Shown here in pieces: positions 14,642-60,713 of a stretch of DNA of 64,000 bases. The notes beneath the pieces are model-generated. The model saw only the letters and a list, made by a program, of their open reading frames with translations, was not told the origin of the DNA and searched no databases. Numbering within the stretch: the first letter of the stretch is position 1; each line of letters opens with the position of its first letter. Position numbers and translations under genes: made by a program. The stretch spans positions 124,001-188,000 of IMG/VR virus record IMGVR_UViG_3300046616_000314; one strand, written 5' to 3'.

Positions 14642-14669
14642 GACAGATGATCTAGCCATAAATAAACTT

Positions 14670-17805: not shown

Positions 17806-17874
17806 TTAAAATTACCTAAAAATTTATAATCCCATATTGCCAAATTGGGACAACGGAAGTCAATAAATAAACGC

Positions 17875-19236
17875 ATGGCTATTCACACATTGGATCATTT
17901 TTATGATCGTCAGCAACTTCGTTTCCTAGAGCAAGTGGTTCGCGCCTTTTCGGGGTTCCAATATACCATTGGTAGCCGCAAGGGTATGCCTCCTGAACTG
18001 AAGATGGTCCCGGTCACGATGGCTAAGACAAGCAAGCTTGTCGCCAACATCATGCGCAACGGTTCTGAAAACAGCCTCAACTCCGCGCCTCAGATTACGG
18101 TCTGGCAGACAGGCTTGACGGGGCGTCGCGAAGACGTTCAGAACCCGGCTCACGTTGATGAGCTAAAAGTTATCGAGCGTGCGATTGATCCGCTCACGAA
18201 CAAATATACGGCTGAACGCGGGCGTAGTTATAGCGTCAAGCGTCTGATGCCCCGACCGTTCAACATGGAAATCCAAATCGACCTTTGGACATCCAACTAC
18301 GAACAAAAATACGAAATCATGGAACAAATTCTTCCGGTTATGTATCCTAACTTCTGGATTCAAAACAGCGACAATGCGTTGGATTGGACTGCCCTGACGG
18401 ATGCTCACCTAGAAGACATCACATGGACTTCTCGTTCTATTCCGGTCGGTACCGAGGAATTGGAAATCTCTACGATGAAGCTGCGTATTCCTATTTGGAT
18501 TTCGCCGCCAGCCATGGTCACGCAACAGCGTCTCATCGAACAAATCGTCACGAACATCAACGACGTTCCGTTCGATGAAAATACTATCGTGGATAAGGAC
18601 TACGCGAAAGGTAAGCGCATGTCGCAAGAGGTTGTTACTCCTGGCAACTTCAAAGTCTACATCGAAGGCAACATCGCTTCGCTAGTCGATGAGCGTGGCT
18701 CGAATGTCGATGCAGAGGGCAATCCCTACAAATGGTCTGAATTGCTTTGGGATTATGGAGCGTTGCGCCCGGCTGTCAGCCGTATGATTTTGAATCCCAA
18801 TGCGGCTGATTTGGAAGCGACATCGGGTATCGTTGGCACGCTGCAATACAGCCAAGACCCGAATGAATTATTTTTCCAAATTGATCCAGACACGATCCCG
18901 AGCAACACGTTTGCTCCGGTTGACGCCTTGATTGATCCTATGACAGCGTTCCCAAGCCAAAAACTTCCCCCGGTGGCTCAAGGTCAACGATATCTGATTA
19001 TCAGTGATGTTGGACCTTCGGTAGCGTGGGGAAATCTGAATGCCAGCGTAAATGATATTATTGAATTTTCGGGTACGGAATGGTTTGTATCGTTTGATGC
19101 TTCGCAATCGGACGCAACACAGTTACAGTTCGTATTGAATTTGAATTCTTCGAATCAACTCAAGTGGACTGGTATAGAATGGATTCTATCTATCGATGGT
19201 ATCTATAACCCTGGCTTCTGGCGTCTAAAACTCTGA
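17875..19236 (+). CDS. tail sheath stabilizer/tail completion protein, T4 gp15-like, with C-terminal extension
   Basis: HFYDRQQLRFL, MPRPF...DLWTSN.EQK..IMEQI...F; C-terminal GQRYLI...WG...NDIIEF module; AATAAATA upstream. Confidence 0.75.
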   Translation: MAIHTLDHFYDRQQLRFLEQVVRAFSGFQYTIGSRKGMPPELKMVPVTMAKTSKLVANIMRNGSENSLNSAPQITVWQTGLTGRREDVQNPAHVDELKVIERAIDPLTNKYTAERGRSYSVKRLMPRPFNMEIQIDLWTSNYEQKYEIMEQILPVMYPNFWIQNSDNALDWTALTDAHLEDITWTSRSIPVGTEELEISTMKLRIPIWISPPAMVTQQRLIEQIVTNINDVPFDENTIVDKDYAKGKRMSQEVVTPGNFKVYIEGNIASLVDERGSNVDAEGNPYKWSELLWDYGALRPAVSRMILNPNAADLEATSGIVGTLQYSQDPNELFFQIDPDTIPSNTFAPVDALIDPMTAFPSQKLPPVAQGQRYLIISDVGPSVAWGNLNASVNDIIEFSGTEWFVSFDASQSDATQLQFVLNLNSSNQLKWTGIEWILSIDGIYNPGFWRLKL

Positions 19237-27519: not shown

Positions 27520-27840
27520 ATGTCCGATTCGCCTGCTTATCGCCTGGGATTCTTTGGGCTCTGCGTCGAAGACAACCACAACAAGGTGTGGGGTTGGATT
27601 GTATCAACGAGCGGAAATCGTTATTACATTTTTTGGGGCAAGGCTGGCGCCAAGAAACTAAGTATGGCGGAACGCAACGTTGGGCAAATTAATAACCTAG
27701 TGCGCGAGAAACAATCGCTAGGTCGTAAGAACGGAACCTACGTCGCGGTTCATAAAGACCATGTTGAGCAAGCCTATCCCAATTTCTGGGAACAGCTTGA
27801 AGAACAATTCTGCTTCATGAGGCTGAAGGCTAAGATTTAG
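27520..27840 (+). CDS. WGR-domain-like protein
   Basis: HNKVWG...YYIFWGK...K..Y pattern; AGGAG RBS. Confidence 0.55.
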   Translation: MSDSPAYRLGFFGLCVEDNHNKVWGWIVSTSGNRYYIFWGKAGAKKLSMAERNVGQINNLVREKQSLGRKNGTYVAVHKDHVEQAYPNFWEQLEEQFCFMRLKAKI

Positions 27841-30217
27841 TCCGCGAGAGATTGGTCTTCAGAGCCGTAGGCAAACGCAGTTCCAATTCAGCGATAACAT
27901 CCTTGAGAGCTTGGCGTTGCGTATTGGATAGGTTCGGAGCAATGTTCAAGATTTTTTGACGAGCCGCCGAACTATCTAGATAGCTAGATTCGGTTGTCAT
28001 CATTTCCTTGAATTCATTACCTTCCATTACGCCATAGTACCAAACGGTCGATGACCATGCTGGCTTGATAGCAGCATGGAAGACCTGTAGCCCGGCATAA
28101 TGACCCATGGGCGTAGCGACTTCACTGATAGTTTTTCCGGTCTTGTGCGTGCTCTCGTTTCGGATAAGCCCAAATACCTCAAGGTCACTCGTTTGGAGAT
28201 TGCTCCCTAGTTTCAATTTGTGTTGCTTTACGAATTTAAGCAAATCAAAATTGCCTGCTTCTAACGCATCTTCAAGACGACGTTCAGCGGCGTCATGATA
28301 TGATGATGACTTGAAACGATTCTTTTGAGTTTTGAATCGTTGATAACGACTTACTGTACCGCTGACCGAAGTGATTTCATCTTTGTCATTCACAATGACA
28401 AGCCACGCCAGATCACTCCAACGCTCGATTTTACCAACGCGGTCTGGGGCTTCGCCATTTAGTGCGAGCGTTATATAATACGACTTTGGAGCATCCTCGC
28501 CAGGGCTAGGAATTTTCCAAATTGGATCGTTGCCAAGTTTGCCGAGGCTTTCGCTAAACTCTTGGAAGGGCTTCCACTCGCCATTGACGAAAGTGACACC
28601 TAGTGTTTCTGGCATATGAACAGCCCAACTTTCACAGAAGAAATGTTGATCATTAAAATAATCAGCGATTTCTTTTGCATATTTTGTGAACAATGCGGGG
28701 TCGCCGTTTGGCTTTTTCATTGCCGAAATCTTATTGTTATTGACTTCGGTCAGAGGCATAGTCTCGCCATCGATGGTGATAGAAACGGCATCACCTTCGC
28801 GCTGAATGGAAATATCTCCATACTGTTTAGCAAACGACTCACCCTTGGATGCAACAGAGATACCTAGATAATTAGCGATCTCTTCCATGTTCATGCGACC
28901 ATTGCCGCGAACGCGCTTGTCGGTTGATGCCTTCTTGAAAATGTTTTGAACTTGATCGACTTGGACCGGGCGAGCGCGTTGCTTCGACCAGAATTCATCC
29001 ATGAAAGCAAACACTTTATCCATGTAGCTTTTCTTGGTGTTGAAGCTGAACGTTTTCTCGTTGGCGGCTTCCAACGACTTGACCAACAGTTGCGCGGTTT
29101 TCTGAGACATTTCCTCAGTGAACGGTAGCTTGAAGCGATCAGCGATAGCTTTGATACGCTCAATTTTTTGAGCCAGCTTCGGACCATATTCTTTTTCGTA
29201 GCTGTATTCGTCGCCACGATGCGGCTCCACATTTTTGAAACGCTCTGCCATATCGGCGGCGATTTCAGTGAATGAAGCCGTATTGTCGTACTGAACTTTG
29301 ATCGGCTTGAAGCCTGGACCTTGAAGCGTGACCGCCATCTTTGAAGCCGTGGATTCAGTATTTTCGCGATGCTTGCGCATGAACGAGTAATCCTTGTCTA
29401 GGATAACGACGATCTTGCGCTTAGCAGCGGTGTAATAAGTTGTCTCGTGTTCGCCACCAACCGCATTCGAAGACACGAGGCGGTCGCCAATAGCTTTGGC
29501 GATCATGGCGGGGAGGCGTTGTAGTTGTTCGGTGTGATCAGCCGAGCCGATCTCAGCTTGCGTTGCCGCGCGATTTCGTAGTTCAAATACGTCGATCACC
29601 TTGAAAGCAGAACGCTTCATGAAGACAATTTGTTCGGGTTCGGCGCGATAGATAATAGCTTCATGTTCTGATCGCGATTTGTCCTCTAGCGCATCGATTC
29701 CTGCTTTCAGGAAGAACGCCGTTTGGGTCGCGTTGTCGTGTTTAACCTTTTGACCGACCTGGGTATAGGACTGCACAACGGCAAAGAACGCTTTTGCGAT
29801 GATATTGCCTTGTTGGAACTGACCCACACGTTGGATCATGTTCATTTTTTTCTCAGGATCGGCAATGCCCATCTTGGTCAGAATCGAGATAGCGGTGTCT
29901 TTGGTCAGGTCGTTGAGAACGAGCTTATGAGCCGACGTGTCTTGGATGACGCGCAGATAGCGGGTCTGTTGTCCGTACTGAATGTCGGCGGGGTGATTAA
30001 GAACGTATTCCAGCGGATAGGCGTACAAGCCCGCCGGGTCCGAGTGATTGGGAACCGGAGAGAAATTACGATCCAGAGTGTTACCGGCGTGATCGCCAAA
30101 ATTCACATATAAATCTTGGCGATGAGCCAAGGGCATATACTTCTTGCGGAAAGCTTCGAACGTCTTCGGAAAGAAGTCCGCAGCGTGAATTTCATTGAGG
30201 ATTTCGTATGCGCGCAT
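27830..30217 (-). CDS. large late protein with PxGLYAYPL domain, candidate capsid-packaged protein
   Basis: 795 aa; MRAYEILNE leader; N-domain paralogous to 60714-62093; AATAAATA 4 nt upstream. Confidence 0.7.
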   Translation of the reverse strand: MRAYEILNEIHAADFFPKTFEAFRKKYMPLAHRQDLYVNFGDHAGNTLDRNFSPVPNHSDPAGLYAYPLEYVLNHPADIQYGQQTRYLRVIQDTSAHKLVLNDLTKDTAISILTKMGIADPEKKMNMIQRVGQFQQGNIIAKAFFAVVQSYTQVGQKVKHDNATQTAFFLKAGIDALEDKSRSEHEAIIYRAEPEQIVFMKRSAFKVIDVFELRNRAATQAEIGSADHTEQLQRLPAMIAKAIGDRLVSSNAVGGEHETTYYTAAKRKIVVILDKDYSFMRKHRENTESTASKMAVTLQGPGFKPIKVQYDNTASFTEIAADMAERFKNVEPHRGDEYSYEKEYGPKLAQKIERIKAIADRFKLPFTEEMSQKTAQLLVKSLEAANEKTFSFNTKKSYMDKVFAFMDEFWSKQRARPVQVDQVQNIFKKASTDKRVRGNGRMNMEEIANYLGISVASKGESFAKQYGDISIQREGDAVSITIDGETMPLTEVNNNKISAMKKPNGDPALFTKYAKEIADYFNDQHFFCESWAVHMPETLGVTFVNGEWKPFQEFSESLGKLGNDPIWKIPSPGEDAPKSYYITLALNGEAPDRVGKIERWSDLAWLVIVNDKDEITSVSGTVSRYQRFKTQKNRFKSSSYHDAAERRLEDALEAGNFDLLKFVKQHKLKLGSNLQTSDLEVFGLIRNESTHKTGKTISEVATPMGHYAGLQVFHAAIKPAWSSTVWYYGVMEGNEFKEMMTTESSYLDSSAARQKILNIAPNLSNTQRQALKDVIAELELRLPTALKTNLSRTKS

Positions 30218-30220
30218 TCT

Positions 30221-30481
30221 TTATTTATTGCACGCCAAGAAGACCATCATGGCTTCTTCTTCGGTATCGAACTGAATCCCGATTTGACTTTCTTTGTTCC
30301 GAACGGGCATCCATTTACCGAGGGTTTCGACTATAAGACCACTTACATATGACTTTTTGGGATATCCATAATTAGTCATGGCATGTTTGTAGACTTCCCA
30401 ATACTCCTTCGGAGGAACATTGGAGAATTCAGATGTTTGGGGGAAAAATATAGCGCGCGGGTTTTGTTTGGAAATATACAT
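30221..30481 (-). CDS. FxxEEDA-FKLKW family small protein
   Basis: QFDTEEEAMMVFL. Confidence 0.65.
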   Translation of the reverse strand: MYISKQNPRAIFFPQTSEFSNVPPKEYWEVYKHAMTNYGYPKKSYVSGLIVETLGKWMPVRNKESQIGIQFDTEEEAMMVFLACNK

Positions 30482-31055: not shown

Positions 31056-31114
31056 GATCCTATTCTCTCACAGATGTTACTTATGTCAAGTAATATTAAA
31101 CAGCTAAATATCGT

Positions 31115-32191
31115 ATGCGCGCATTCGAACTGTTTGAAGAAAAGAAAACCCTCTACGTCTCTCGTAAGCTGAAGAACGGCGAGGCGTTAGTGAAATGGGC
31201 TAAGGATCAAGGCTTTACTGAATGCCTAGCCCCATCGGAAATGCATGTCACGATTGCATATTCCAAGAGCAAGATCGAATGGAGCGATATGACTTCAGCC
31301 GAGAAAGAGCTTACGGTCAAAAAGAAATCTGGCAAGCGTAAGATCAAATGTTTCGGGGAAGACAAAAACGCAGTCGTTTTGGTTTTCGATAGCGAGGAAC
31401 TTAAGGATCGCTGGAAAGAATTTAAAGATGAGCTAGGGGCATCCTGGGACTTCCCGACTTATCATGCTCACGTAACCATTACCTACAACGGTCTTCCCGA
31501 AGGTGTGAAGCTCAAAGACATTACGCCCTATGAGGGTCCTTTGGAATTTGGTCCCGAACGCAAGTCGGAGATCACCAAGGATTGGAAGGGTAAGACCAAG
31601 ACGAAGAAACTCACGGAATCATTTCGTCTGGCTGACGTAGATACCGAAGAACTGTACCAGACCTTCAAGAAATCCTATGAAGCCGAAACGGGCGCAAGCT
31701 GGTCTAAGGACAAGATGCTAGAGCGGGCGCGCAATTGGGAATTCTTCGGAGAACCTACAGGCTTCGTTGCGATTCGTCGGCAAGCCTCTGGGATGGTGAA
31801 ACTCGTTGCTACGGCAGGCGACTTCAAAGGCATCATGCGCGGCTTCTCAGAACTTCAGAACGAGGGTGGTCCGTTGTGGGGCGCCGTCTCTAATCAACTA
31901 GCGAGAATCGCCAAGAGCCGGGGTATGATCGTGCCTCACCTGATGCCGGGTGGTCCGACCTTCATTAAGCTGATGGTTCCCATGATCCCGGCAGCGGTGT
32001 TCGGTGGGTTCGAACCAAAGATCAATGACGATGGTGGCATGACATTTGAGTATGATGATGTAGGGGCAGCTACCAAGTATTTGATTGGTAACAAAGAATA
32101 TTTCAAAATGGCTATTGCCAATAACAATCTTTCATCGTATATTTCAAAGGTTCCTGGGTTGAAACAATTCCTAGCTTTGATTGGATTATGA
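31115..32191 (+). CDS. Acb1-like 2H phosphoesterase (anti-CBASS-like) fused to a second domain
   Basis: Two HxT motifs (MHVTIAYS, HAHVTITY) plus GASWDF and PYEGPLEFGPE; MRAFELFEE leader; GCTAAATA upstream. Confidence 0.75.
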   Translation: MRAFELFEEKKTLYVSRKLKNGEALVKWAKDQGFTECLAPSEMHVTIAYSKSKIEWSDMTSAEKELTVKKKSGKRKIKCFGEDKNAVVLVFDSEELKDRWKEFKDELGASWDFPTYHAHVTITYNGLPEGVKLKDITPYEGPLEFGPERKSEITKDWKGKTKTKKLTESFRLADVDTEELYQTFKKSYEAETGASWSKDKMLERARNWEFFGEPTGFVAIRRQASGMVKLVATAGDFKGIMRGFSELQNEGGPLWGAVSNQLARIAKSRGMIVPHLMPGGPTFIKLMVPMIPAAVFGGFEPKINDDGGMTFEYDDVGAATKYLIGNKEYFKMAIANNNLSSYISKVPGLKQFLALIGL

Positions 32192-36121: not shown

Positions 36122-37474
36122 ATGATTCGACTGCACAATTCGTTGTCACGGAAGTTGGAAGACTTCAAGCCGATTGATTCTAATCGGGTGACGATGTACG
36201 TGTGTGGTGCGACCGTTTATGACACCCCTCACCTGGGTAACGCCCGTCCTGCTGTTGTGTTCGACGTGCTGTTCCGGCTGTTGCAACACGCCTATCCCTT
36301 GGTTGAGTATGCGCGAAACTTCACTGACGTTGATGACAAGATCATCGCCCGGTCGAACGAATCCGGCGAACCCATCAATGAACTGACTGAACGGGTCATC
36401 CGCGAGTATCACGCCAGCATGGATGCGCTGGGCGTGGCGCGACCGACTTATGAGCCGCGCGTGACGGGCAACATGGCTCCGATCAAGGGCATGATCTCTG
36501 AACTGATTATGTCGGGGCACGCCTATGTCTCTGAAGGTCATGCACTATTCGACGTGAAATCATTCCCGTTGCATGGATCATTGAGCGGACATCTTCAAGA
36601 AAACTTGGATGTTGGACACCGCGTGGCTGTTGCCGACTATAAGCGCGATCCGGCGGATTTCGTTTTGTGGAAGCCTGCCAAGGAAGGCGAGCCCGCTTGG
36701 GACTTCCCTTCGGTTAGTTCGGGTCGCCCTGGCTGGCACATTGAATGCTCCGCGATGATCAAAAATGTTTTCGCGGACAACACCATTGATATTCATGGCG
36801 GCGGCGCGGACCTTCGGTTCCCGCATCACGAATGCGAAATGTCACAGAGCCATGCGGCGAATGGTCATCATTTAGCTAACTACTGGCTGCACAATGCCAT
36901 GGTTACGCTTGGTGGAAGCAAGATGCAAAAGACGGGTAGTCATATGATTACTGTCGATCAAATTTTGCGAAACAATGATGGGGCTTCAGTTCGCTTTGCA
37001 TTGCTGTCAAGCCATTATCGGTCGCCTCTGGATTGGTCGCCAGAACTACTCGAAAACAGCCATGGGACGCTTGCTAAGTGGCATAAGCTACTTTCGGCGA
37101 GCGATGCTCCTGCGGAGGCTAACAACGTCTCTACGGCGATCCTGAAGCCTCTGTATACCGATCTGAACGTCCCTGGCGCGGTGGGTGCAATCCATAACGC
37201 GCTGGCGACTGTCACGGATACGGTTGCCGCCGGGGTTCGCTATGCTGCTTCGGTCATGGGCTTCGATCTCAGTCAGGAAGCCAACCTAGCGTTCTTGAAG
37301 GAACCGGAGTTGGAGCCGCAATTGGTTCTGGAAATCGAGCGTTTGCTAGGCGAACGGGCTGTTGCCAGACAAAATAAAAATTTTGCGGAATCGGATCGGG
37401 TTCGCGAACTGATCGCCAACATGGGGGTCGTTGTGGAAGACGGTCCCGAAGGCACGACGTGGAAAGTCAAATGA
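36122..37474 (+). CDS. cysS: cysteinyl-tRNA synthetase
   Basis: YVCG.TVYD..HLGNAR, NFTDVDDKII, DF.LWK, GRPGWHIECSAM, DIHGGG.DL.FPHHE, KMQKT (KMSKS variant), C-terminal anticodon-binding domain. Confidence 0.95.
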   Translation: MIRLHNSLSRKLEDFKPIDSNRVTMYVCGATVYDTPHLGNARPAVVFDVLFRLLQHAYPLVEYARNFTDVDDKIIARSNESGEPINELTERVIREYHASMDALGVARPTYEPRVTGNMAPIKGMISELIMSGHAYVSEGHALFDVKSFPLHGSLSGHLQENLDVGHRVAVADYKRDPADFVLWKPAKEGEPAWDFPSVSSGRPGWHIECSAMIKNVFADNTIDIHGGGADLRFPHHECEMSQSHAANGHHLANYWLHNAMVTLGGSKMQKTGSHMITVDQILRNNDGASVRFALLSSHYRSPLDWSPELLENSHGTLAKWHKLLSASDAPAEANNVSTAILKPLYTDLNVPGAVGAIHNALATVTDTVAAGVRYAASVMGFDLSQEANLAFLKEPELEPQLVLEIERLLGERAVARQNKNFAESDRVRELIANMGVVVEDGPEGTTWKVK

Positions 37475-41111: not shown

Positions 41112-42299
41112 ATGGCTGATTTTTCCGTTGAAGTGGTGCGGATCGCTGCACCCGTTACCGATCACCCGAACGCTGACCGCCTGTCGCTGATTCAAATCGG
41201 CGGCTACCTCTGCATTTCCGCCAAGCTGGACGACGGCTCGCATCGCTACGAAGAAGGCGATCTGGTCGTCTACGTTCCCGAAGCGTCGGTGGTTCCTGAG
41301 TACATCCTGAAGCCGGGCTTCTGGGATGAAGCCAAGGGCAAGGGCATCCTGGCGGGGTCGAAGGGCGACCGCGTTAAGGCGAAGCGTCTGCGCGACATTT
41401 TCTCGCAAGGCATTCTGCTGGCTGTCGAATTCGACATGGGGGCTCCGACTGTTGGCGACGATGGTTCGCTTGATCTGACTCCGCACTTCTACATCACCAA
41501 CGAAGCTGGTGAGCGACTGAAGGTGGAAGCCGGTGATAACGTCGCCGAATTCCTGGGCATCACCAAGTACGAGCCGCCGGTTCCGGCGTGCCTCGCGGGT
41601 GAAGTCTGCAACATCTTCGGCAAGACCGCCAAGTATGATTTCGAAAGCATTCAACGGGTCACTGACCTGTTCGAAATCGGCGAAGATGTCATCGCCACCG
41701 AAAAGATTCACGGCACGAACAGCCAGATCGGCTACGTTCCGGGTCTGAACCATGAAGAACTGTTCTTCGACGGCAACCTGTACATCGGTTCGAAGGGTCT
41801 TTCGGCTCAAGGTCTGGTGATGAAGAACAACGAAAAGAACAAGACGAATACCTACGTCCTGGCTCTGACGAACCTTCTGGATCAAGGCTTCGGCGACAAG
41901 ATCAAGGTGATTTCGGATCGTTTCGACGGCGCCGTTGTTCGCGTCTTCAGCGAAATCTACGGCAAGGGCATTCAAGACCTGTCGTACGGTACGGACAAGC
42001 CGACCATCGCGGCGTTCGACATTCAAATCAACGGCGAATACGTCGCCTACGATCTGATGGTTGAACTGGCGACGGAACTGGGCATCGCCGTGGTTCCGAC
42101 GCTGTACGAAGGTCCCTACGACCTTGAAGCTCTGATCGTCCATCGGGACGGCATTGACACGATTTCGCAAACCAACGTGCGCGAAGGCATCGTGATCAAG
42201 GCGCGGAACGGCGGTCGTCACGTCCACCACGGTCGTAAGATCGGTAAGTGGGTGAGCCCGGCGTATCTGGAACGCAAGAACGCCACCGAACACAACTAA
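41112..42299 (+). CDS. ATP-dependent RNA ligase, DRB0094/Rnl2-like
   Basis: N-terminal HPNADRLS domain; motif I TEKIHGTN, SEIYG.GIQ, FDI, REGIVIK. Confidence 0.9.
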   Translation: MADFSVEVVRIAAPVTDHPNADRLSLIQIGGYLCISAKLDDGSHRYEEGDLVVYVPEASVVPEYILKPGFWDEAKGKGILAGSKGDRVKAKRLRDIFSQGILLAVEFDMGAPTVGDDGSLDLTPHFYITNEAGERLKVEAGDNVAEFLGITKYEPPVPACLAGEVCNIFGKTAKYDFESIQRVTDLFEIGEDVIATEKIHGTNSQIGYVPGLNHEELFFDGNLYIGSKGLSAQGLVMKNNEKNKTNTYVLALTNLLDQGFGDKIKVISDRFDGAVVRVFSEIYGKGIQDLSYGTDKPTIAAFDIQINGEYVAYDLMVELATELGIAVVPTLYEGPYDLEALIVHRDGIDTISQTNVREGIVIKARNGGRHVHHGRKIGKWVSPAYLERKNATEHN

Positions 42300-44997: not shown

Positions 44998-45432
44998 ATG
45001 AGTTGGGATGCCAGATGGCTCTCACAAGCGGAACACTCTGCAAGTTGGAGCAAAGATCGAAGCCGACACGTCGGCGCGGTCATCGTGAGAGGCGATATTG
45101 ATATTTCGAAAGGCTGGAATGGTTTTCCACGCAAGATTAACGACGAAGTTGACGAAAGACACGAACGTCCGCTGAAATATCTTTGGACGGAACACGCCGA
45201 AAGAAACGCAATCTATAACGCTGCAAAGCATGGTTTCGCGACTGACGGTTGTAGAATTTATCAGACTTTATATCCCTGCGCACATTGCGCCCGAGCCATT
45301 ATTCAATCGGGCATAATCGAAGTCATCACAACCGAACCGGATTGGAATGACCCGACCTATGCCGAAGAATTTAAAGTAACTAAACAGATGCTCGCGGAAG
45401 CATCAGTAAGTGTAAGGTTTTTAGATTTATGA
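44998..45432 (+). CDS. dCMP deaminase
   Basis: SKD...VGAVIV, G.NG.P, HAERNAI, PCAHC zinc motifs. Confidence 0.9.
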   Translation: MSWDARWLSQAEHSASWSKDRSRHVGAVIVRGDIDISKGWNGFPRKINDEVDERHERPLKYLWTEHAERNAIYNAAKHGFATDGCRIYQTLYPCAHCARAIIQSGIIEVITTEPDWNDPTYAEEFKVTKQMLAEASVSVRFLDL

Positions 45433-47507
45433 GCAAGCTTTTCGTTGAAAAAGTAATGTTGAACCTTCTCACCACTTGGAGAGAAACGTTCTACTACGAA
45501 AATCTGGTGCGTCGGGCTATGCACCACGGCGCGGGTCTCTTTGACCTGGGTGGTGTGTCATCGGATTGGCGTGAATTCCTGACCAACAAGCGCAACGCTC
45601 ACGTCGCGATCTTGGAAGCGCGAGGCGATAGCCGCGCGTCGAGCTACGACTATCTGGTTCCGATCACTGAATACCTCGACAAGTCGGACATGCAAACCGT
45701 GTACGACATGATCACGGGTAGCAAGCCGGAACTGAAGGAAGACTTCGTTCTGGACGCCAATATTGAACTGTTGGGCGGTCTGCTTGAACTGACTCCGATG
45801 GAACGTCTGGTTCTGCAAATGTCGGCGGAAATGCAGGAATTGGAATATCCAATGTCCGATATGTTCCAACGTCTGAATCACGATGACAAGATGCTGGACC
45901 CGGCTCTTGCCTATTCGGTCCTCTTTGGTAAGGCGGAATCGGAATTCAAGAACATCAGCAAGAGCTTCCTGCTGAACAGCGGCATTCTTCAGACGAACAT
46001 CGACTACAAGTATCTTCATCAAATCAATGAAGAACTGGTAGATTCGTTCACGGATAAGAAACTGACTCTGGATACTCTGGACGCAGTTTTGTTCCCGAGC
46101 GACATGAGCGCGAATCTGGACCTGACTTGCTACTCGCACCTGTCCAAGGAAATCGAGCGCACCGAACGTGTCATCCAAGTTTCGTTGGACGAAAAGAAAA
46201 TCGGTACCAATGTCATGTTCTGGGGTATCCCCGGTACTGGCAAGACCCAACTGGCTCTGACCCTGGCGAAGACCCACGGCTGGGACTTGAAGGTCATCGG
46301 TGACATTTCGAAGAATGATGCGACCGAAAAGAGCCGTGCGCAACGCATCGCTAGCTTGAAGATCGCGATGAAGCTGTATGCGGGCAAACCCAATACGGTT
46401 CTGTTGTTCGATGAAATGGAAGACCTGTTCAAGCACGACACGAACGCCGTGTTCTCGAAAGCCTTCATCAACCGCATCGTGGAATCCACTCCGGTTCCGA
46501 TCATCTGGACGACCAACGATCTGATCTCGCTGGGTAGCGCGGTGCTTCGCCGTATGACCTACAACATCGCGTTTGAAATCCCCACGCTTTCGGCTCGCCG
46601 CAAGATTTGGGAAAAGCATAGCGCGGACTACAAGGTTGATATCGACGCCGATACGATTTCGTCTCTGGCGACGAACTACAACATCGTTCCGGCTCTGATC
46701 GAAAACGCGGTCAAAATTTCTTCGTCGGCTGGTCTGGCTCACGCCGAATTGCCTGATATCGTCACGTCGCTGGATCGACTGATGAATTATGGTGAGAAGC
46801 GTAAGTTCCATATCACCACTAAGAAAGACACTCCGTATAGCCCGAAATGGGCTAACACTGATCTCGATTTGGACGATCTGACTTCACGTCTGACCAAAGC
46901 CAAACCGAATTTCAGCCTGTGTCTCTATGGTGCGCCCGGTACGGGTAAGAGCGAATATGGTCGTTATCTGACGGATAAGATCGGTAAGCCGCTGCTGTAC
47001 AAGCGTGCCTCTGATCTGATCAGCATGTGGGTTGGTGAAACTGAGAAGAACATCGCGCGTTGTTTCGAGGAAGCCAAAGAAGAACAAATGGTTCTGCTGA
47101 TTGACGAAGGTGATACTTTCCTGCGCTCTCGCGAAAACGCGAAAAATAGCTGGGAAGTCACTCAAGTCAATGAAATGCTGTCGCAAATGGAATCCCATTC
47201 GCAACCGTTCATTCTGACCACGAACTTGATGAAGGAACTGGACCCGGCGGCTATGCGTCGCTTCACCTTCAAGATGAAGTTCAACTTCCTGCGTTCTGAC
47301 CAAGCTGTCGAACTGTTCCAAGCGTATTTCGGAGTGGAAGCCCCCAAGGCAATCCTCACGAATGAAATCTTGGCTCCGGGTGACTTCGCCAACATCAAGC
47401 GTAAGACGGATATCCTGGGCATCACCGATGCCGAAGAAATCTACAAGATGATTCTTGAAGAATGCGCTCTGAAGCCGGATTCCCCGCCGCGCAAGCTGGG
47501 CTTCTAA
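45429..47507 (+). CDS. AAA+ ATPase with two ATPase domains
   Basis: GIPGTGKT/LLFDEME and GAPGTGKS/LLIDEGD; LDPAAMRRF; C-terminal LGF. Confidence 0.9.
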   Translation: MSKLFVEKVMLNLLTTWRETFYYENLVRRAMHHGAGLFDLGGVSSDWREFLTNKRNAHVAILEARGDSRASSYDYLVPITEYLDKSDMQTVYDMITGSKPELKEDFVLDANIELLGGLLELTPMERLVLQMSAEMQELEYPMSDMFQRLNHDDKMLDPALAYSVLFGKAESEFKNISKSFLLNSGILQTNIDYKYLHQINEELVDSFTDKKLTLDTLDAVLFPSDMSANLDLTCYSHLSKEIERTERVIQVSLDEKKIGTNVMFWGIPGTGKTQLALTLAKTHGWDLKVIGDISKNDATEKSRAQRIASLKIAMKLYAGKPNTVLLFDEMEDLFKHDTNAVFSKAFINRIVESTPVPIIWTTNDLISLGSAVLRRMTYNIAFEIPTLSARRKIWEKHSADYKVDIDADTISSLATNYNIVPALIENAVKISSSAGLAHAELPDIVTSLDRLMNYGEKRKFHITTKKDTPYSPKWANTDLDLDDLTSRLTKAKPNFSLCLYGAPGTGKSEYGRYLTDKIGKPLLYKRASDLISMWVGETEKNIARCFEEAKEEQMVLLIDEGDTFLRSRENAKNSWEVTQVNEMLSQMESHSQPFILTTNLMKELDPAAMRRFTFKMKFNFLRSDQAVELFQAYFGVEAPKAILTNEILAPGDFANIKRKTDILGITDAEEIYKMILEECALKPDSPPRKLGF

Positions 47508-47575: not shown

Positions 47576-47893
47576 ATGTTGAGCACCACACTTATCACCA
47601 TCGCGGTCATCATTGTCATGATCAGCACGGCTGTTTCCATTTTTGCCTTTTTGGTATGGAATGGTGCAATCACTGATCGTGATGACGCAGGGATAATGAT
47701 TTTTGCAAGCTGCGCGGGTGGAGTTTTCTTCTTCCTGTCGATCCCTGCTATTTTTATCATTTTGATTTTCAGAGGCTTGTTCAAGCTTTTTGAAGGTTTC
47801 TTCACTGACGTTATTTGGTATAGCCAGCAACGTAAGAAAGAAATCACACAAGCAGAAGAAGCACACAAAGCTAAACTTAAGCAAAGAAAATAA
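47576..47893 (+). CDS. membrane protein
   Basis: Two transmembrane segments. Confidence 0.6.
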   Translation: MLSTTLITIAVIIVMISTAVSIFAFLVWNGAITDRDDAGIMIFASCAGGVFFFLSIPAIFIILIFRGLFKLFEGFFTDVIWYSQQRKKEITQAEEAHKAKLKQRK

Positions 47894-47894
47894 T

Positions 47895-48938
47895 ATGCTG
47901 ATCGAATCTAAGAAGTATTACGACTACGACGACGTTTTGATTCTACCGAAGAAGACTTTTCTCAAGTCACGTAATGACGTTTCTTTGACGGTACTCTATA
48001 AGACCAAGCATTCGCAACGTTCTTTAGTAGGCGTGCCGATCTTTGCGGCAAACATGGACACCACAGGTACGTTTGAAATGGCGAGAGCCCTTCAAGCGGA
48101 ATCCATGTTCACCTGTCTGCATAAGTTTTACACGGCTGAAGAGATCATCGCCCAATTCGATAGCGGATTGTCTTATAATTTTGCGTTCGTAAGCATCGGC
48201 AAGTCGGCTGCGGACATCGAAAAATTTTCAAAGATTCACGACAAATATCCTAACGCGCATCTGTGTATCGATGTTGCCAACGGCTATACCGACGACTTCC
48301 TTACCTTTGTGAAGGAAGTCCGCGCAACGTTCCCGAAGACCGTCATCATGGCGGGCAACGTTGCTACGGATGACATCATTGCCGAATACGACGCAGCGGG
48401 TGTCGATATCGTCAAGATCGGCATCGGTCCTGGGAACTTCTGTCGTACTCGCACGACGGCTGGTGTTGGTGTTCCCCAACTGTCAGCGGTTATGGACACG
48501 TCGGCTGCTGCTGATGGCTATGGCATCTTGATTTGCGCCGATGGCGGGCTGAATGAATATTGCGATTTCGCGAAGGCATTTGCTGGCGGCGCCAACTTTG
48601 TCATGGCTGGTTCGATGTTCGCTGCCCATGAAGAATCGGGTGGTGACAAAATTACCGAGAACGGCGAGACGTTCAAGATCACCTACGGAATGTCGTCTGA
48701 GACTGCCATGAACAAATATTATGGCAAGGTGGATGGCTATCGCGCATCCGAAGGTCGAACCGTAAAGGTCCCGTATAAGGGTCCGGTGGCGGACACTGTT
48801 CGAAATATCCTGGGTAGCTTGCGTAGCACGCTGACTTATACTAATATCGCCAAGCTGGATAATTTGTACATGGCGAAGATGATTGTGGTCAACAATACCA
48901 TTAATCGCAGCCACGTACGGAACACGATTGGGAACTGA
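47895..48938 (+). CDS. guaC: GMP reductase
   Basis: DYDDVLILPK..SR, AANMDTTGTFEMA, CIDVANGY, KIGIGPG..C.TR, ADGG, YRASEGRTV; no CBS domains. Confidence 0.9.
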   Translation: MLIESKKYYDYDDVLILPKKTFLKSRNDVSLTVLYKTKHSQRSLVGVPIFAANMDTTGTFEMARALQAESMFTCLHKFYTAEEIIAQFDSGLSYNFAFVSIGKSAADIEKFSKIHDKYPNAHLCIDVANGYTDDFLTFVKEVRATFPKTVIMAGNVATDDIIAEYDAAGVDIVKIGIGPGNFCRTRTTAGVGVPQLSAVMDTSAAADGYGILICADGGLNEYCDFAKAFAGGANFVMAGSMFAAHEESGGDKITENGETFKITYGMSSETAMNKYYGKVDGYRASEGRTVKVPYKGPVADTVRNILGSLRSTLTYTNIAKLDNLYMAKMIVVNNTINRSHVRNTIGN

Positions 48939-52715: not shown

Positions 52716-53058
52716 GAAAGATATCCCGCGCATCGAGATAAATGATTATCTTGAACGCCTGACCGGTCAAAGTCTTGAAGGTTCGATTGATTTCGCCATC
52801 AAGACCTTTGTGGACATTAAACACAAGTATCCCGATCACAAGCTGCATGTCACCCATGAAGGTGATAGCTGGGGATCGGAATTTGAAATCAGCGGGACTC
52901 GTCCCGAAACTGATGAAGAATATGAGAAGCGCAAGGCTCTCCTAGAGCGGCGTGATGCCAAAGAACGTGAGCGCAAGAAAAACGCTTCCAAGGCGAAGAA
53001 AGAACGCGATCTCAAAGAATTGGCTCGTTTGAAAGCTCTTTACGAGAAAGACAAATGA
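52708..53058 (+). CDS. hypothetical phage protein
   Basis: RPETDEEYEKR...LARLKALYE pattern. Confidence 0.65.
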   Translation: MPKKDIPRIEINDYLERLTGQSLEGSIDFAIKTFVDIKHKYPDHKLHVTHEGDSWGSEFEISGTRPETDEEYEKRKALLERRDAKERERKKNASKAKKERDLKELARLKALYEKDK

Positions 53059-53351
53059 GTGAGCGTTTCCCATATGATCTAACTCTCCATAAAACCGCTG
53101 ATCTTACGAATGCTTGGCAGGTTCGGATTGTTATAAAGTATGGTACTACGCCGCCCCCGGCAAATTCCAGTATTTGGAAATTCGGGATGAATGATTTCTC
53201 GCTAGCCGAAGAGAACCCGTTCCCCTTTGGAAGAATGCAAGCTTGGATCGAAGACAACATAGACAGCTATGTCTATATTAATCCACATGGTTGTTTATTT
53301 GCATTCGATACAGAAGAAGAAGCTTGCTACTTTATGCTGTACTGGAAATGA
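53055..53351 (+). CDS. FxxEEDA-FKLKW family small protein
   Basis: AFDTEEEACYFMLYWK. Confidence 0.72.
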   Translation: MSERFPYDLTLHKTADLTNAWQVRIVIKYGTTPPPANSSIWKFGMNDFSLAEENPFPFGRMQAWIEDNIDSYVYINPHGCLFAFDTEEEACYFMLYWK

Positions 53352-53650
53352 GTTTCAAATTCAAAATTTTTCACGACGACACCGGGTCCGAAAAATTCCC
53401 ATGGGCGGTGGTTGCTGAATTTATAAATGCCTCTCCGTTTGATATCGCAAAAAATTATGCGGGGAGAGTGAATTTGCCATATTTGCCATCTTTGGCGTCT
53501 GAATCGATTAGTAGTTTTGCGCGACTTGAAACATGGCTAAGCGATAATATTGATATCTTCGAAGTATGCCCCGACTCGACCCGCTGGGAAAAAGAGTATT
53601 GGTTTGCGACTGAAGAAGACGCCTATCATTTCATGTTGTATTGGAAATGA
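53348..53650 (+). CDS. FxxEEDA-FKLKW family small protein
   Basis: WFATEEDAYHFMLYWK. Confidence 0.72.
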   Translation: MSFKFKIFHDDTGSEKFPWAVVAEFINASPFDIAKNYAGRVNLPYLPSLASESISSFARLETWLSDNIDIFEVCPDSTRWEKEYWFATEEDAYHFMLYWK

Positions 53651-53925
53651 GCGTAGAATATTTTATAGAATTTCACACCCGAGAGCCGGAACTACAATAT
53701 CCGTGGATGATTTTAGTTCGGACCACGGGAACCCGGCTTACCTCTATGTGGTACGACCGGGATTCTTGGTATCCCTATGAAGAAATGACTAAATGGCTCC
53801 AACTTGAATTAATAAATGAGCGAATGGAAAAGCTCAATTACGAATCCAAGGGAGACAAATACAAGAAGGCTTACTTCTTCACGACAGAAGAAGATGCTAT
53901 GAAGTTTTTACTTCGGTGGAAGTGA
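53647..53925 (+). CDS. FxxEEDA-FKLKW family small protein
   Basis: FFTTEEDAMKFLLRWK. Confidence 0.72.
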   Translation: MSVEYFIEFHTREPELQYPWMILVRTTGTRLTSMWYDRDSWYPYEEMTKWLQLELINERMEKLNYESKGDKYKKAYFFTTEEDAMKFLLRWK

Positions 53926-54763
53926 CCTGGGCGGCTCTCATAGCTTCTAGTTTTTCGTTCAGATTGAACCGCAACAATTGATCCCATTCGGGAACGCGGT
54001 CGTATTGGTGGACGACGGGATACAGCTTGCCCCCGGCGGTCTTCACGCCTTCTTCGTCCAGAACCGGTTCAGGCTCTAGCAGGAACGGTCTAAAGCCGTC
54101 TACCTTCTTGGGATCGGCGAAAGTCCCCGCTTGGCAAGCAAACCCATCTTCAGACAATCCAATTTGGGCTACATCCTTATAGGGATGCGAGTCGAGAAGC
54201 AGATTGTATCCGCTTTGGTCAGCGACAGGGAAGCCAGTTGACTTGGCGATCTGGGAAACGGCTAAGCAAAGGTCAGAGATATACGGCGCCTCACCAGCTA
54301 GGACGCCGACGTTGTATACGCACTTGTCCATGATGTTGTTCGCAATGGCTGGGAAGCCTTGATTCAAGTTATCCCGGTTCCATGCTTCATCCTTGAACTT
54401 GATGCCTTCTCCGACCGCGTAGAACTTACCGGTCAGGTTGGCGGCGAGCCAATCCATAGGATTTGATTGGAAATAAACGTCGCGAGCATCGGTCACGACA
54501 CAGTAGCGCAACTTGTCGGCTACTGGCTTCATAACTTCATAAAAATCATGGAAGCGTTGATTATAGATCGACCCGCGCAAGGGCATTTCGATCACTTGGA
54601 AACCGAGTTGCTTGAAATTCGCGATCACGTCGGCATTATTATCGTATACGATGACAGCCTTGAGACCGGTGTAACCTGAAGAAATTAGGCTAAGAGCCCA
54701 CAGGTTGACTTGTTCCCACTTGTATCCGCCTATCGCCCCTAGAACGAGGTCTTGTTTAGACAT
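53897..54763 (-). CDS. putative glycosyltransferase (GT-A)
   Basis: VVTDARDVYFQSNP, N.GV.AG, DQ..YN, VVHQYDR. Confidence 0.72.
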   Translation of the reverse strand: MSKQDLVLGAIGGYKWEQVNLWALSLISSGYTGLKAVIVYDNNADVIANFKQLGFQVIEMPLRGSIYNQRFHDFYEVMKPVADKLRYCVVTDARDVYFQSNPMDWLAANLTGKFYAVGEGIKFKDEAWNRDNLNQGFPAIANNIMDKCVYNVGVLAGEAPYISDLCLAVSQIAKSTGFPVADQSGYNLLLDSHPYKDVAQIGLSEDGFACQAGTFADPKKVDGFRPFLLEPEPVLDEEGVKTAGGKLYPVVHQYDRVPEWDQLLRFNLNEKLEAMRAAQVTSTEVKTS

Positions 54764-57458: not shown

Positions 57459-57513
57459 AGAATAGTCCTTATAATATCAGGGATATGCTTTCTGTCAACT
57501 CATAAATAAAGAT

Positions 57514-60672: not shown

Positions 60673-60713
60673 GCGGACACCTATAGATATTTAGTTGGCT
60701 ATAAATAATAGTT

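Follow-up and report, generated by a model that had tools for sequence, protein, structure and literature searches.

One gene of a huge phage joins an Acb1-type 2H phosphoesterase domain to a GNAT-fold domain of an unnamed family, and at the junction of the two stands a candidate prohead-protease site. The gene lies behind a late-promoter-like motif, and its product begins with a leader that resembles a T4 capsid-targeting sequence (CTS). It is an open reading frame (ORF) of 358 amino acids (aa) at 31115..32191 (+), recognised from the ORF list and the domain matches in a 64-kb window, the whole stretch of DNA that was analysed. The window corresponds to bases 124,001-188,000 of a phage record of IMG/VR (IMGVR_UViG_3300046616_000314), which is 561,116 bp in length and estimated to be 97% complete; coordinates prefixed G000 refer to this whole 561-kb record, and all others refer to the 64-kb window. 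This phage, which is uncultured and, at 561 kb, huge, has a T4-like head module and is distinct from T4 itself. The start of the ORF leaves no ambiguity: the frame stays open for only 5 codons further upstream, and these include no start codon. By megablast, the whole gene found no match in 50,697 phage records. Our preferred reading, which is tentative, is that the ORF encodes a small 'polyvalent' effector precursor that would be targeted to the capsid, cut in two and ejected; for the full chain, the probability seems to us to fall a little short of even. Acb1 itself, the occurrence of 2H and GNAT domains in polyvalent proteins, and the combination of a CTS with gp21 processing in T4 are already known. 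What is new is the recurrent fusion of Acb1 to the GNAT-like domain; the unnamed GNAT-like family, too, is newly defined here, along with its size.

The two domains of the ORF product

The N-terminal domain, residues 11-159 (31145..31591, +), was delimited by its match to the Pfam family PF23474, which scores 129 bits against a cut-off of 27 (E = 1.4e-37) and covers profile positions 1-143 of 144. The generic 2H models of Pfam, LigT_PEase and 2_5_RNA_ligase2, reach merely 14-17 bits on the same domain. Both catalytic H-x-T motifs are in place: H44-V-T46 (31244..31252, +) is aligned to HTT of the Acb1 structure 7T26, and H119-V-T121 (31469..31477, +) to HIT of the same structure. Among PDB sequences, the domain matches Acb1 7T26 (E = 7e-8) and the C-terminal domain of the Pam3 portal (8hds, residues 470-620, E = 1.3e-20). 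The N-terminal domain almost certainly belongs to the Acb1 family, and judged from its sequence it would hydrolyse the cyclic nucleotides of CBASS, an antiphage signalling system that is based on cyclic oligonucleotides.

The C-terminal domain, residues 169-358 (31619..32188, +), found no match in Pfam (E <= 1), PHROG or NCBIfam, and was characterised by an AlphaFold2 model and its structure matches. The model, built from 51 sequences, has a predicted local distance difference test score (pLDDT) of 95.3 and a predicted template modelling score (pTM) of 0.87. When 48,161 PDB representative chains were searched with VIA, the top 50 matches were all GNAT acyltransferases (Z of 8.2-10.2, ~120-135 aligned residues), the best being 2fiw_A with a Z of 10.2 and a root-mean-square deviation of 2.4 A over 123 residues. 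The PDB matches in Foldseek were likewise all GNAT, with a probability of up to 1.00 and a weak E value of 2e-3. A relative of 1,489 aa in BFVD bears the name 'NAT_SF domain containing', and a language-model atlas gave a weak GNAT lead (0.84-0.86). The domain profile found no GNAT match among PDB sequences. On the strength of the model, the C-terminal domain very probably has a GNAT fold.

In the 561-kb genome, the GNAT-like domain is present in a single copy. A word search found 7 relatives with 51-57% identity, namely 4 stand-alone proteins (200-226 aa), 1 Acb1 fusion and 2 fusions to an N-domain of ~300 aa with HExxH. When 1.84 billion cluster representatives were searched with a profile, the domain turned up in 341 clusters (50% identity), 197 of them at E <= 1e-30, and it occurs alone or at the N-terminus, at the C-terminus or in the interior of proteins of up to 3,603 aa. 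Acb1 is found in 11 and ART-PolyVal in 6 of the 57 multidomain members, and this co-occurrence is a signature of 'polyvalent proteins' (PMC5512222). Since the family travels with Acb1 and ADP-ribosyltransferase domains, it is a concrete candidate for an anti-defence enzyme. When phages were searched by tblastn with the C-terminal domain, matches were confined to two copies of one 735-kb metagenomic phage.

The sequence-only reading of this DNA had placed an Acb1 pattern with two HxT motifs at residues ~10-155, followed by a basic linker, an LTE and a second domain of ~190 aa that was taken to be unrelated and new. The first three of these are borne out by the PF23474 match, the alignment to 7T26 and the run KGKTKTKK before L166-T167-E168. 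As for the second domain, it indeed has no match in Pfam, PHROG or NCBIfam, but the structure search which that reading had suggested returned GNAT acyltransferases as all of its best matches, and the domain belongs to a large family of polyvalent type. The earlier interpretation as a whole is partly supported, its sequence signals being sound and its claim of unrelated novelty for the second domain being not.

Two further features of the GNAT-like family may be mentioned here. In P0003 and P0005 (L004 4001-5827), the domain is fused to the ~300-aa N-domain with HExxH (HELRHATQ), and these fusions have the same leader, junction and ATAAATA-N5-ATG promoter. The N-domains of both proteins found no match in Pfam; they may be zincin-like peptidases. 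The first helix of the domain (window 31652-31732) carries the conserved pattern Y-x-x-F-x-x-S-Y-x-x-x-T-G-x-x-W. Y188, Q223, K229, W255, K321 and Y329 of the domain are invariant. Kinship to the C-terminal helix of PARP1 WGR was considered and rejected, as the match is marginal (27 residues, E = 0.13) and probably due to chance or a shared short motif. The GNAT-like domain with this marginal match often neighbours ADP-ribosyltransferases.

Late-promoter-like motif and N-terminal leader

The motif CTAAATA (31104..31110, +) stands 4 nt before the ATG of the ORF and conforms to the consensus [A/C]TAAATA-N4-5-ATG. Genome-wide, this consensus occurs 47 times versus 0-7 times in ten Markov-1 simulations (about 4 expected), and 27 of the 86 ATAAATA heptamers are followed, after 4-5 nt, by the ATG that opens an ORF of at least 50 aa. 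Further sites in the window are at 14658-14669, 17863-17874, 30218-30228 (-), 57502-57513 and 60701-60713. A T4 gp15-like tail gene also has the motif upstream, and a variant of it is found upstream of a gene of the head module. The T4 late promoter is TATAAATA. The genome also has a gene for a gp55-like sigma factor, a relative of the T4 late sigma (G000 408016-408333, -, E = 4.5e-7). The identification of [A/C]TAAATA as the late promoter is a well-supported inference. No Shine-Dalgarno sequence is present at the starts with this motif, which ends only 4-5 nt from the ATG; were it a -10-like late promoter, the late mRNAs behind it would be leaderless or almost leaderless. A scan for sigma-70 promoters and terminators around the gene gave nothing above shuffles. 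The major capsid gene has GTAAATA farther upstream, plus AGGAG.

The leader MRAFELFE, residues 1-8 (31115..31138, +), ends in L-F-E. Genes behind the motif tend to start with M-R-x-x-x-[ILV]-x-E, and a start of the form M-x(4-9)-[LIV]-x-E is found in 26 of 41 motif genes versus 93 of 859 others (odds ratio 14.3, Fisher p = 1.3e-14). Other leaders in the genome are MRAYEILNE (in a neighbouring gene of 795 aa), MRWLEIINE, MRDLLNIVE and MREFMKIVE, and homologues of the ORF start with MKIYQLLE, MRIKQIIGE or MKIEDLFE. For comparison, the CTS read from NC_000866 is MKTYQEFIAE in IPII and IPIII of T4 and MKTFKEF...ITE in IPI. Codons vary synonymously among the leaders. A search with a narrow alignment gave 6 loci of relatives (L029-L034), of which L029 and L030 retain the leader despite having no promoter motif. 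One leader protein has an ART-PolyVal domain (E = 3e-19) and is a functional analogue of T4 Alt; when 17 other leader proteins were compared with Pfam, ART-PolyVal alone was found, with one strong and one weak match. A class of genes that combine the promoter motif with the leader, at least 26 in one huge phage, is new.

The domain junction and the prohead protease

Between the domains lies the basic linker KGKTKTKK, K158-K165 (31586..31609, +), as judged from pLDDT and homologues, and similar K-rich linkers are present in the Acb1 fusions P0010, P0013 and P0014. It leads directly to L166-T167-E168 (31610..31618, +), a candidate prohead-protease site at which the cut would fall after E168 and before S169. 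All 8 close homologues have a Glu at the position of E168 and L, I or V at P3, with S, G or A at P1', irrespective of what precedes the site. Across the family, [LIV]xE is found within 24 residues upstream of the domain in 95 of 148 occurrences (64%) against a background of 26%; in the 148 occurrences the Glu precedes the first conserved helix by 12-16 residues, and Ser predominates at P1'. Moreover, 12 of the 13 Acb1-containing clusters have [LIV]xE after Acb1, even before a different domain, the sites before other domains being VNE/S, IDE/S, ITE/K, LDE/D and LKE/T (the slash marks the predicted cut). That [LIV]xE follows Acb1 before different domains argues for a feature of the junction and against a structural role in the GNAT-like domain. 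Stand-alone homologues consist of the domain and, before it, a short leader whose end falls exactly on this junction site (MKIYQLLE/S, MRIKQIIGE/S, MLIE/S), so that stand-alone and fused forms would have the same mature N-terminus. In a model of the full-length protein (pLDDT 88, pTM 0.61), residues 1-9 are below 50 and blocks of residues 151-170 are at 62-69, and owing to this low confidence both candidate sites, E8 and E168, are probably flexible.

The same genome provides a protease for such sites. A T4-like head module with protease, scaffold-like, core-like and capsid genes is located at G000 334-342 kb (-). Its gp21-like protease gene (G000 337784-338425) adjoins scaffold-like and gp23-like genes and encodes a protease domain of the gp21 family, Peptidase_S77 (PF03420, E = 5.5e-27, G000 337919-338380). 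The gp23-type capsid protein (E = 7.8e-78) has VLE43 and LME53 in its N-terminal region, near the cut position of T4 gp23. In T4, the cut by gp21 falls behind the glutamate of I/LxE motifs (PMC12991175), and Alt is cut at ITE-6 and LTE-619 (PMC5694885). From these sequence features, cleavage of the ORF product at [LIV]xE appears somewhat more likely than not. A prohead protease, not an embedded metallopeptidase, may process such polyvalent precursors, which would be new. The head module also contains a 592-aa gene (probably portal), an 80-aa protein starting with MKIFEFVDE and a 356-aa core-like gene.

A late promoter, a leader and an internal LTE had been put forward in the sequence-only reading as signs of a packaged polyprotein that is cut into two effectors. 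The promoter motif proves to be real genome-wide, the leader belongs to an N-terminal class that is tied to this motif across the genome, and the idea of a cut gains from the T4-type gp21 gene in the same genome. The internal site stands in part, as [LIV]xE is conserved at domain junctions of the family and lies in a probably flexible linker. A lone LTE, however, was rejected as meaningful in itself, since the count of [LIV]xE in the ORF is at or below chance.

Proposed mechanism and its implications

In the proposed mechanism, a T4-late-type promoter, the [A/C]TAAATA beside the ATG, would drive transcription of the gene, and the first 8 residues, MRAFELFE, would act like the CTS of T4 internal proteins and bring the protein into the prohead core. 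A gp21-type prohead protease, cutting after [L/I/V]-x-E, would take off the leader after E8 and cut the basic linker after E168. Two enzymes would be freed inside the capsid, the Acb1 2H phosphodiesterase (~9-168) and a GNAT-fold acyltransferase-like protein (169-358), and both would exit the capsid along with the DNA. Acb1 would then hydrolyse CBASS-type cyclic oligonucleotide signals in the next host. The GNAT-like enzyme would acylate a host target, most likely a protein, as has been proposed for the GNATs of polyvalent proteins and shown for Rac of phage phiKMV. Capsid targeting, cleavage, ejection and the substrates of both enzymes are steps that we infer.

Anti-CBASS nucleases are usually viewed as made after infection. 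If the mechanism is true, a virion-delivered Acb1 would act ahead of any phage gene expression, and it would link the triggering of CBASS by the prohead protease with the injection of multi-enzyme polyvalent proteins by phages. The promoter motif, the leader and the [LIV]xE junctions together would offer a simple sequence rule to predict the packaged proteome of uncultured huge phages. In a wider version, which we regard as unlikely, this huge phage and its relatives (e.g., a 576-kb sediment phage) would have a scaled-up system like that of the T4 internal proteins. It would comprise dozens of late leader genes, the prohead protease as polyprotein processor and a virion-delivered anti-defence set including the first pre-packaged Acb1, and the GNAT-like partner would be a new anti-CBASS or anti-signalling acylating activity on a CBASS component or another defence protein.

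Counter-evidence and alternative explanations

Several observations weigh against a packaged precursor that is cut into two active enzymes. The ORF has 3 [LIV]xE (LFE8, LPE129 and LTE168) versus about 5 expected by composition, the motif being a short one, and LPE129 lies inside the folded Acb1 domain of the full-length model. The E168 site is 1-2 residues from the folded GNAT core, in which F170 makes a beta-bridge according to the model; since the site adjoins the folded core, part of its conservation could be structural. Unknown genes surround the ORF, and the head module is ~180 kb away. In LR756501, the 735-kb phage, the GNAT-like domain is at the end of a 737-aa protein and has no LxE junction, and some Acb1 fusions begin directly at the Acb1 domain without a leader. 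The promoter motif is absent upstream of L029 and L030, and L031-L034, which are stand-alone copies, have no leader and no LxE; promoter, leader and LxE are therefore lineage-specific signals. As for the second enzyme, no GNAT family model in Pfam (E <= 1), NCBIfam or PHROG matches the C-terminal domain. Motif A of GNAT enzymes is the pyrophosphate-binding loop Q/R-x-x-G-x-G/A, which follows strand beta4. The equivalent segment of the ORF product, KLVATAG-DFKG-IMRG (family consensus KLVGxAGxPxSIxxG), is glycine-rich and has no canonical Q/RxxGxG/A. Because no GNAT hidden Markov model (HMM) matches and the acetyl-CoA motif A is non-canonical, GNAT membership is incomplete, and acyl-CoA is a putative substrate.

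The product may instead stay uncut in the cytoplasm as a late bifunctional enzyme that destroys late CBASS signals in the producing cell, with its N-terminus and the upstream motif serving initiation on leaderless or nearly leaderless mRNAs. This is rather unlikely in our view, and yet it agrees with what is known of the timing: CBASS is triggered late by the prohead protease, T4 gp21 (PMC12991175), so that a late promoter, taken by itself, would be compatible with a cytoplasmic Acb1 in the producing cell too, and late signals that arise from cleavage of CD-NTases by the prohead protease make a late Acb1 sensible even if it is unpackaged (PMC12991175). T4 Acb1 is without a CTS, and Acb1 of phage G was not detected in proteomic data (PMC12484599), which tells against packaging as well. 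With the motif 4-5 nt from the ATG and no Shine-Dalgarno sequence, the first codons are possibly under constraint at the RNA level. However, the leader is kept at the protein level despite synonymous changes, and it is kept also in L029 and L030, which are without the motif. The leader proteins include ART-PolyVal, a typical injected effector, and an uncut cytoplasmic enzyme leaves both the invariant [LIV]xE of the junction and the identical predicted mature N-termini unexplained.

Packaging of the product does not by itself imply division. Only the leader may be removed, or nothing, and the protein may be delivered as one two-domain effector in which LTE is conserved for structural reasons, as is suggested by F170 in the GNAT-like core and by T163-K165, which form a strand in the model. 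Packaging without processing is known for some polyvalent proteins, e.g., N4 vRNAP (PMC5512222), and the recurrent fusion of Acb1 to the GNAT-like domain (13 clusters) could mean that physical linkage is needed. Nevertheless, we find an undivided effector decidedly improbable, as [LIV]xE follows Acb1 also where the next domain is a different one, and the linker of low confidence and the pTM of 0.61 point to no fixed packing of the two domains. A different function of the domains themselves is very improbable. In this explanation, the 2H domain would serve in RNA-end repair or as a 2',3'-cyclic phosphodiesterase against host tRNA or RNA nucleases, and the GNAT-like domain would act on RNA or aminoacyl-tRNA, neither being anti-CBASS. 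PHROG 755 is labelled 'RNA ligase', the matches to LigT and 2_5_RNA_ligase2 exist though they are weak, some GNAT-fold enzymes use aminoacyl-tRNA, and MprF-type chains are among the weak Foldseek matches. An RNA ligase gene lies ~10 kb downstream (41112-42299), but it is neither adjacent to the ORF nor co-oriented with it in an operon. The Acb1 HMM, with its 129 bits versus the 14-17 bits of LigT-type models, argues for Acb1, and polyvalent-type 2H domains were found never to be associated with RNA ligases in the survey by Iyer et al. (PMC5512222).

Comparison with known systems

Like Acb1 (T4 gene 57B; 7T26; PF23474), the N-terminal domain is a 2H phosphoesterase with two HxT motifs and a full-length HMM match. 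Unlike T4 Acb1, a stand-alone protein of 152 aa, the ORF product has a CTS-like leader and a C-terminal GNAT-like domain, and its gene has a late-type promoter. In T4 (NC_000866 73591-74410, L028), acb1 (57B) is immediately upstream of ipI, whose product is a CTS-bearing, ejected anti-restriction protein. The T4 proteins IPI-III and Alt have a short leader of the form M-[KR]-x-[FY]-x-x-[FIL]-x-E, which is cut in T4 after [IL]xE and which the ORF shares, and their payloads are diverse, being anti-defence or host-modifying. There is no homology to them beyond the leader pattern; in the ORF, the payloads are Acb1 and the GNAT-like domain, and the internal site would split a two-enzyme precursor.

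Both the 2H phosphoesterase domain and the GNAT domain appear in the survey of polyvalent proteins (Iyer, Burroughs, Anand, de Souza, Aravind 2017, PMC5512222); one GNAT family in it neighbours an ART domain, and 2H domains are fused to MuF or portal (PMC5512222). The ORF resembles these proteins in having at least two conflict-related effector domains in one polypeptide, and delivery with the DNA is predicted for them (PMC5512222). It differs from them in being minimal, with two domains and no MuF, portal or MPTase domain, in having a GNAT-like family that is not covered by Pfam, and in its processing, which would be by a T4-type prohead protease and not by an embedded metallopeptidase.

Among solved structures, the nearest to the N-terminal domain in sequence is that of a portal-Acb1 fusion, gp3 of cyanophage Pam3 (8hds). 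In such fusions, the Acb1-type domain is covalently attached to the portal, whereas the ORF is a separate gene with a leader. The structure paper of Pam3 contains no discussion of the Acb1-type portal domain. Acb1-type C-termini are present on annotated portal or prohead-protease genes of many Rhizobium, Pseudomonas (phiPSA1-like), Synechococcus and Ruegeria phages.

Phage-encoded GNAT proteins with a host target are known as well. AcrVA5 is a phage-encoded GNAT modifier of a defence protein. Rac of phiKMV is a phage GNAT acetyltransferase that modifies a host protein (PMC7824862). The ORF shares with both the GNAT fold and the phage origin; unlike in Rac and AcrVA5, its C-terminal domain is without detectable GNAT-HMM similarity and without a canonical acetyl-CoA motif A.

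Neighbouring genes and relatives

Outside the ORF, the 795-aa gene at 27830..30217 (-) has the leader MRAYEILNE behind ATAAATA-N4-ATG. In LR756501, a member of its family is fused to the GNAT-like domain, and in L004 the two lie next to each other. Paralogous leader proteins of 530-800 aa (MRAFELFEKRRNP...) are encoded at G000 112841-123591 (-) and 52785-54668 (+) and, in the window, at 27830-30217 (-), and further members are found at L004 1177-3546 and L003 824-3037. They share a module 'GxYxYP ... H-x-x-E-P-x-Q', which is duplicated in L004. The family found no match in Pfam; as a lead, a language model likens it to ART-PolyVal, RES or AcrIF11-like ADP-ribosyltransferases (0.89). Other genes of the window encode a cysteinyl-tRNA synthetase (36122-37474), the RNA ligase (41112-42299), an AAA ATPase (45429-47507), an IMPDH/GMP-reductase-like protein (47790-48938) and the T4 gp15-like tail sheath stabiliser (17845-19236).

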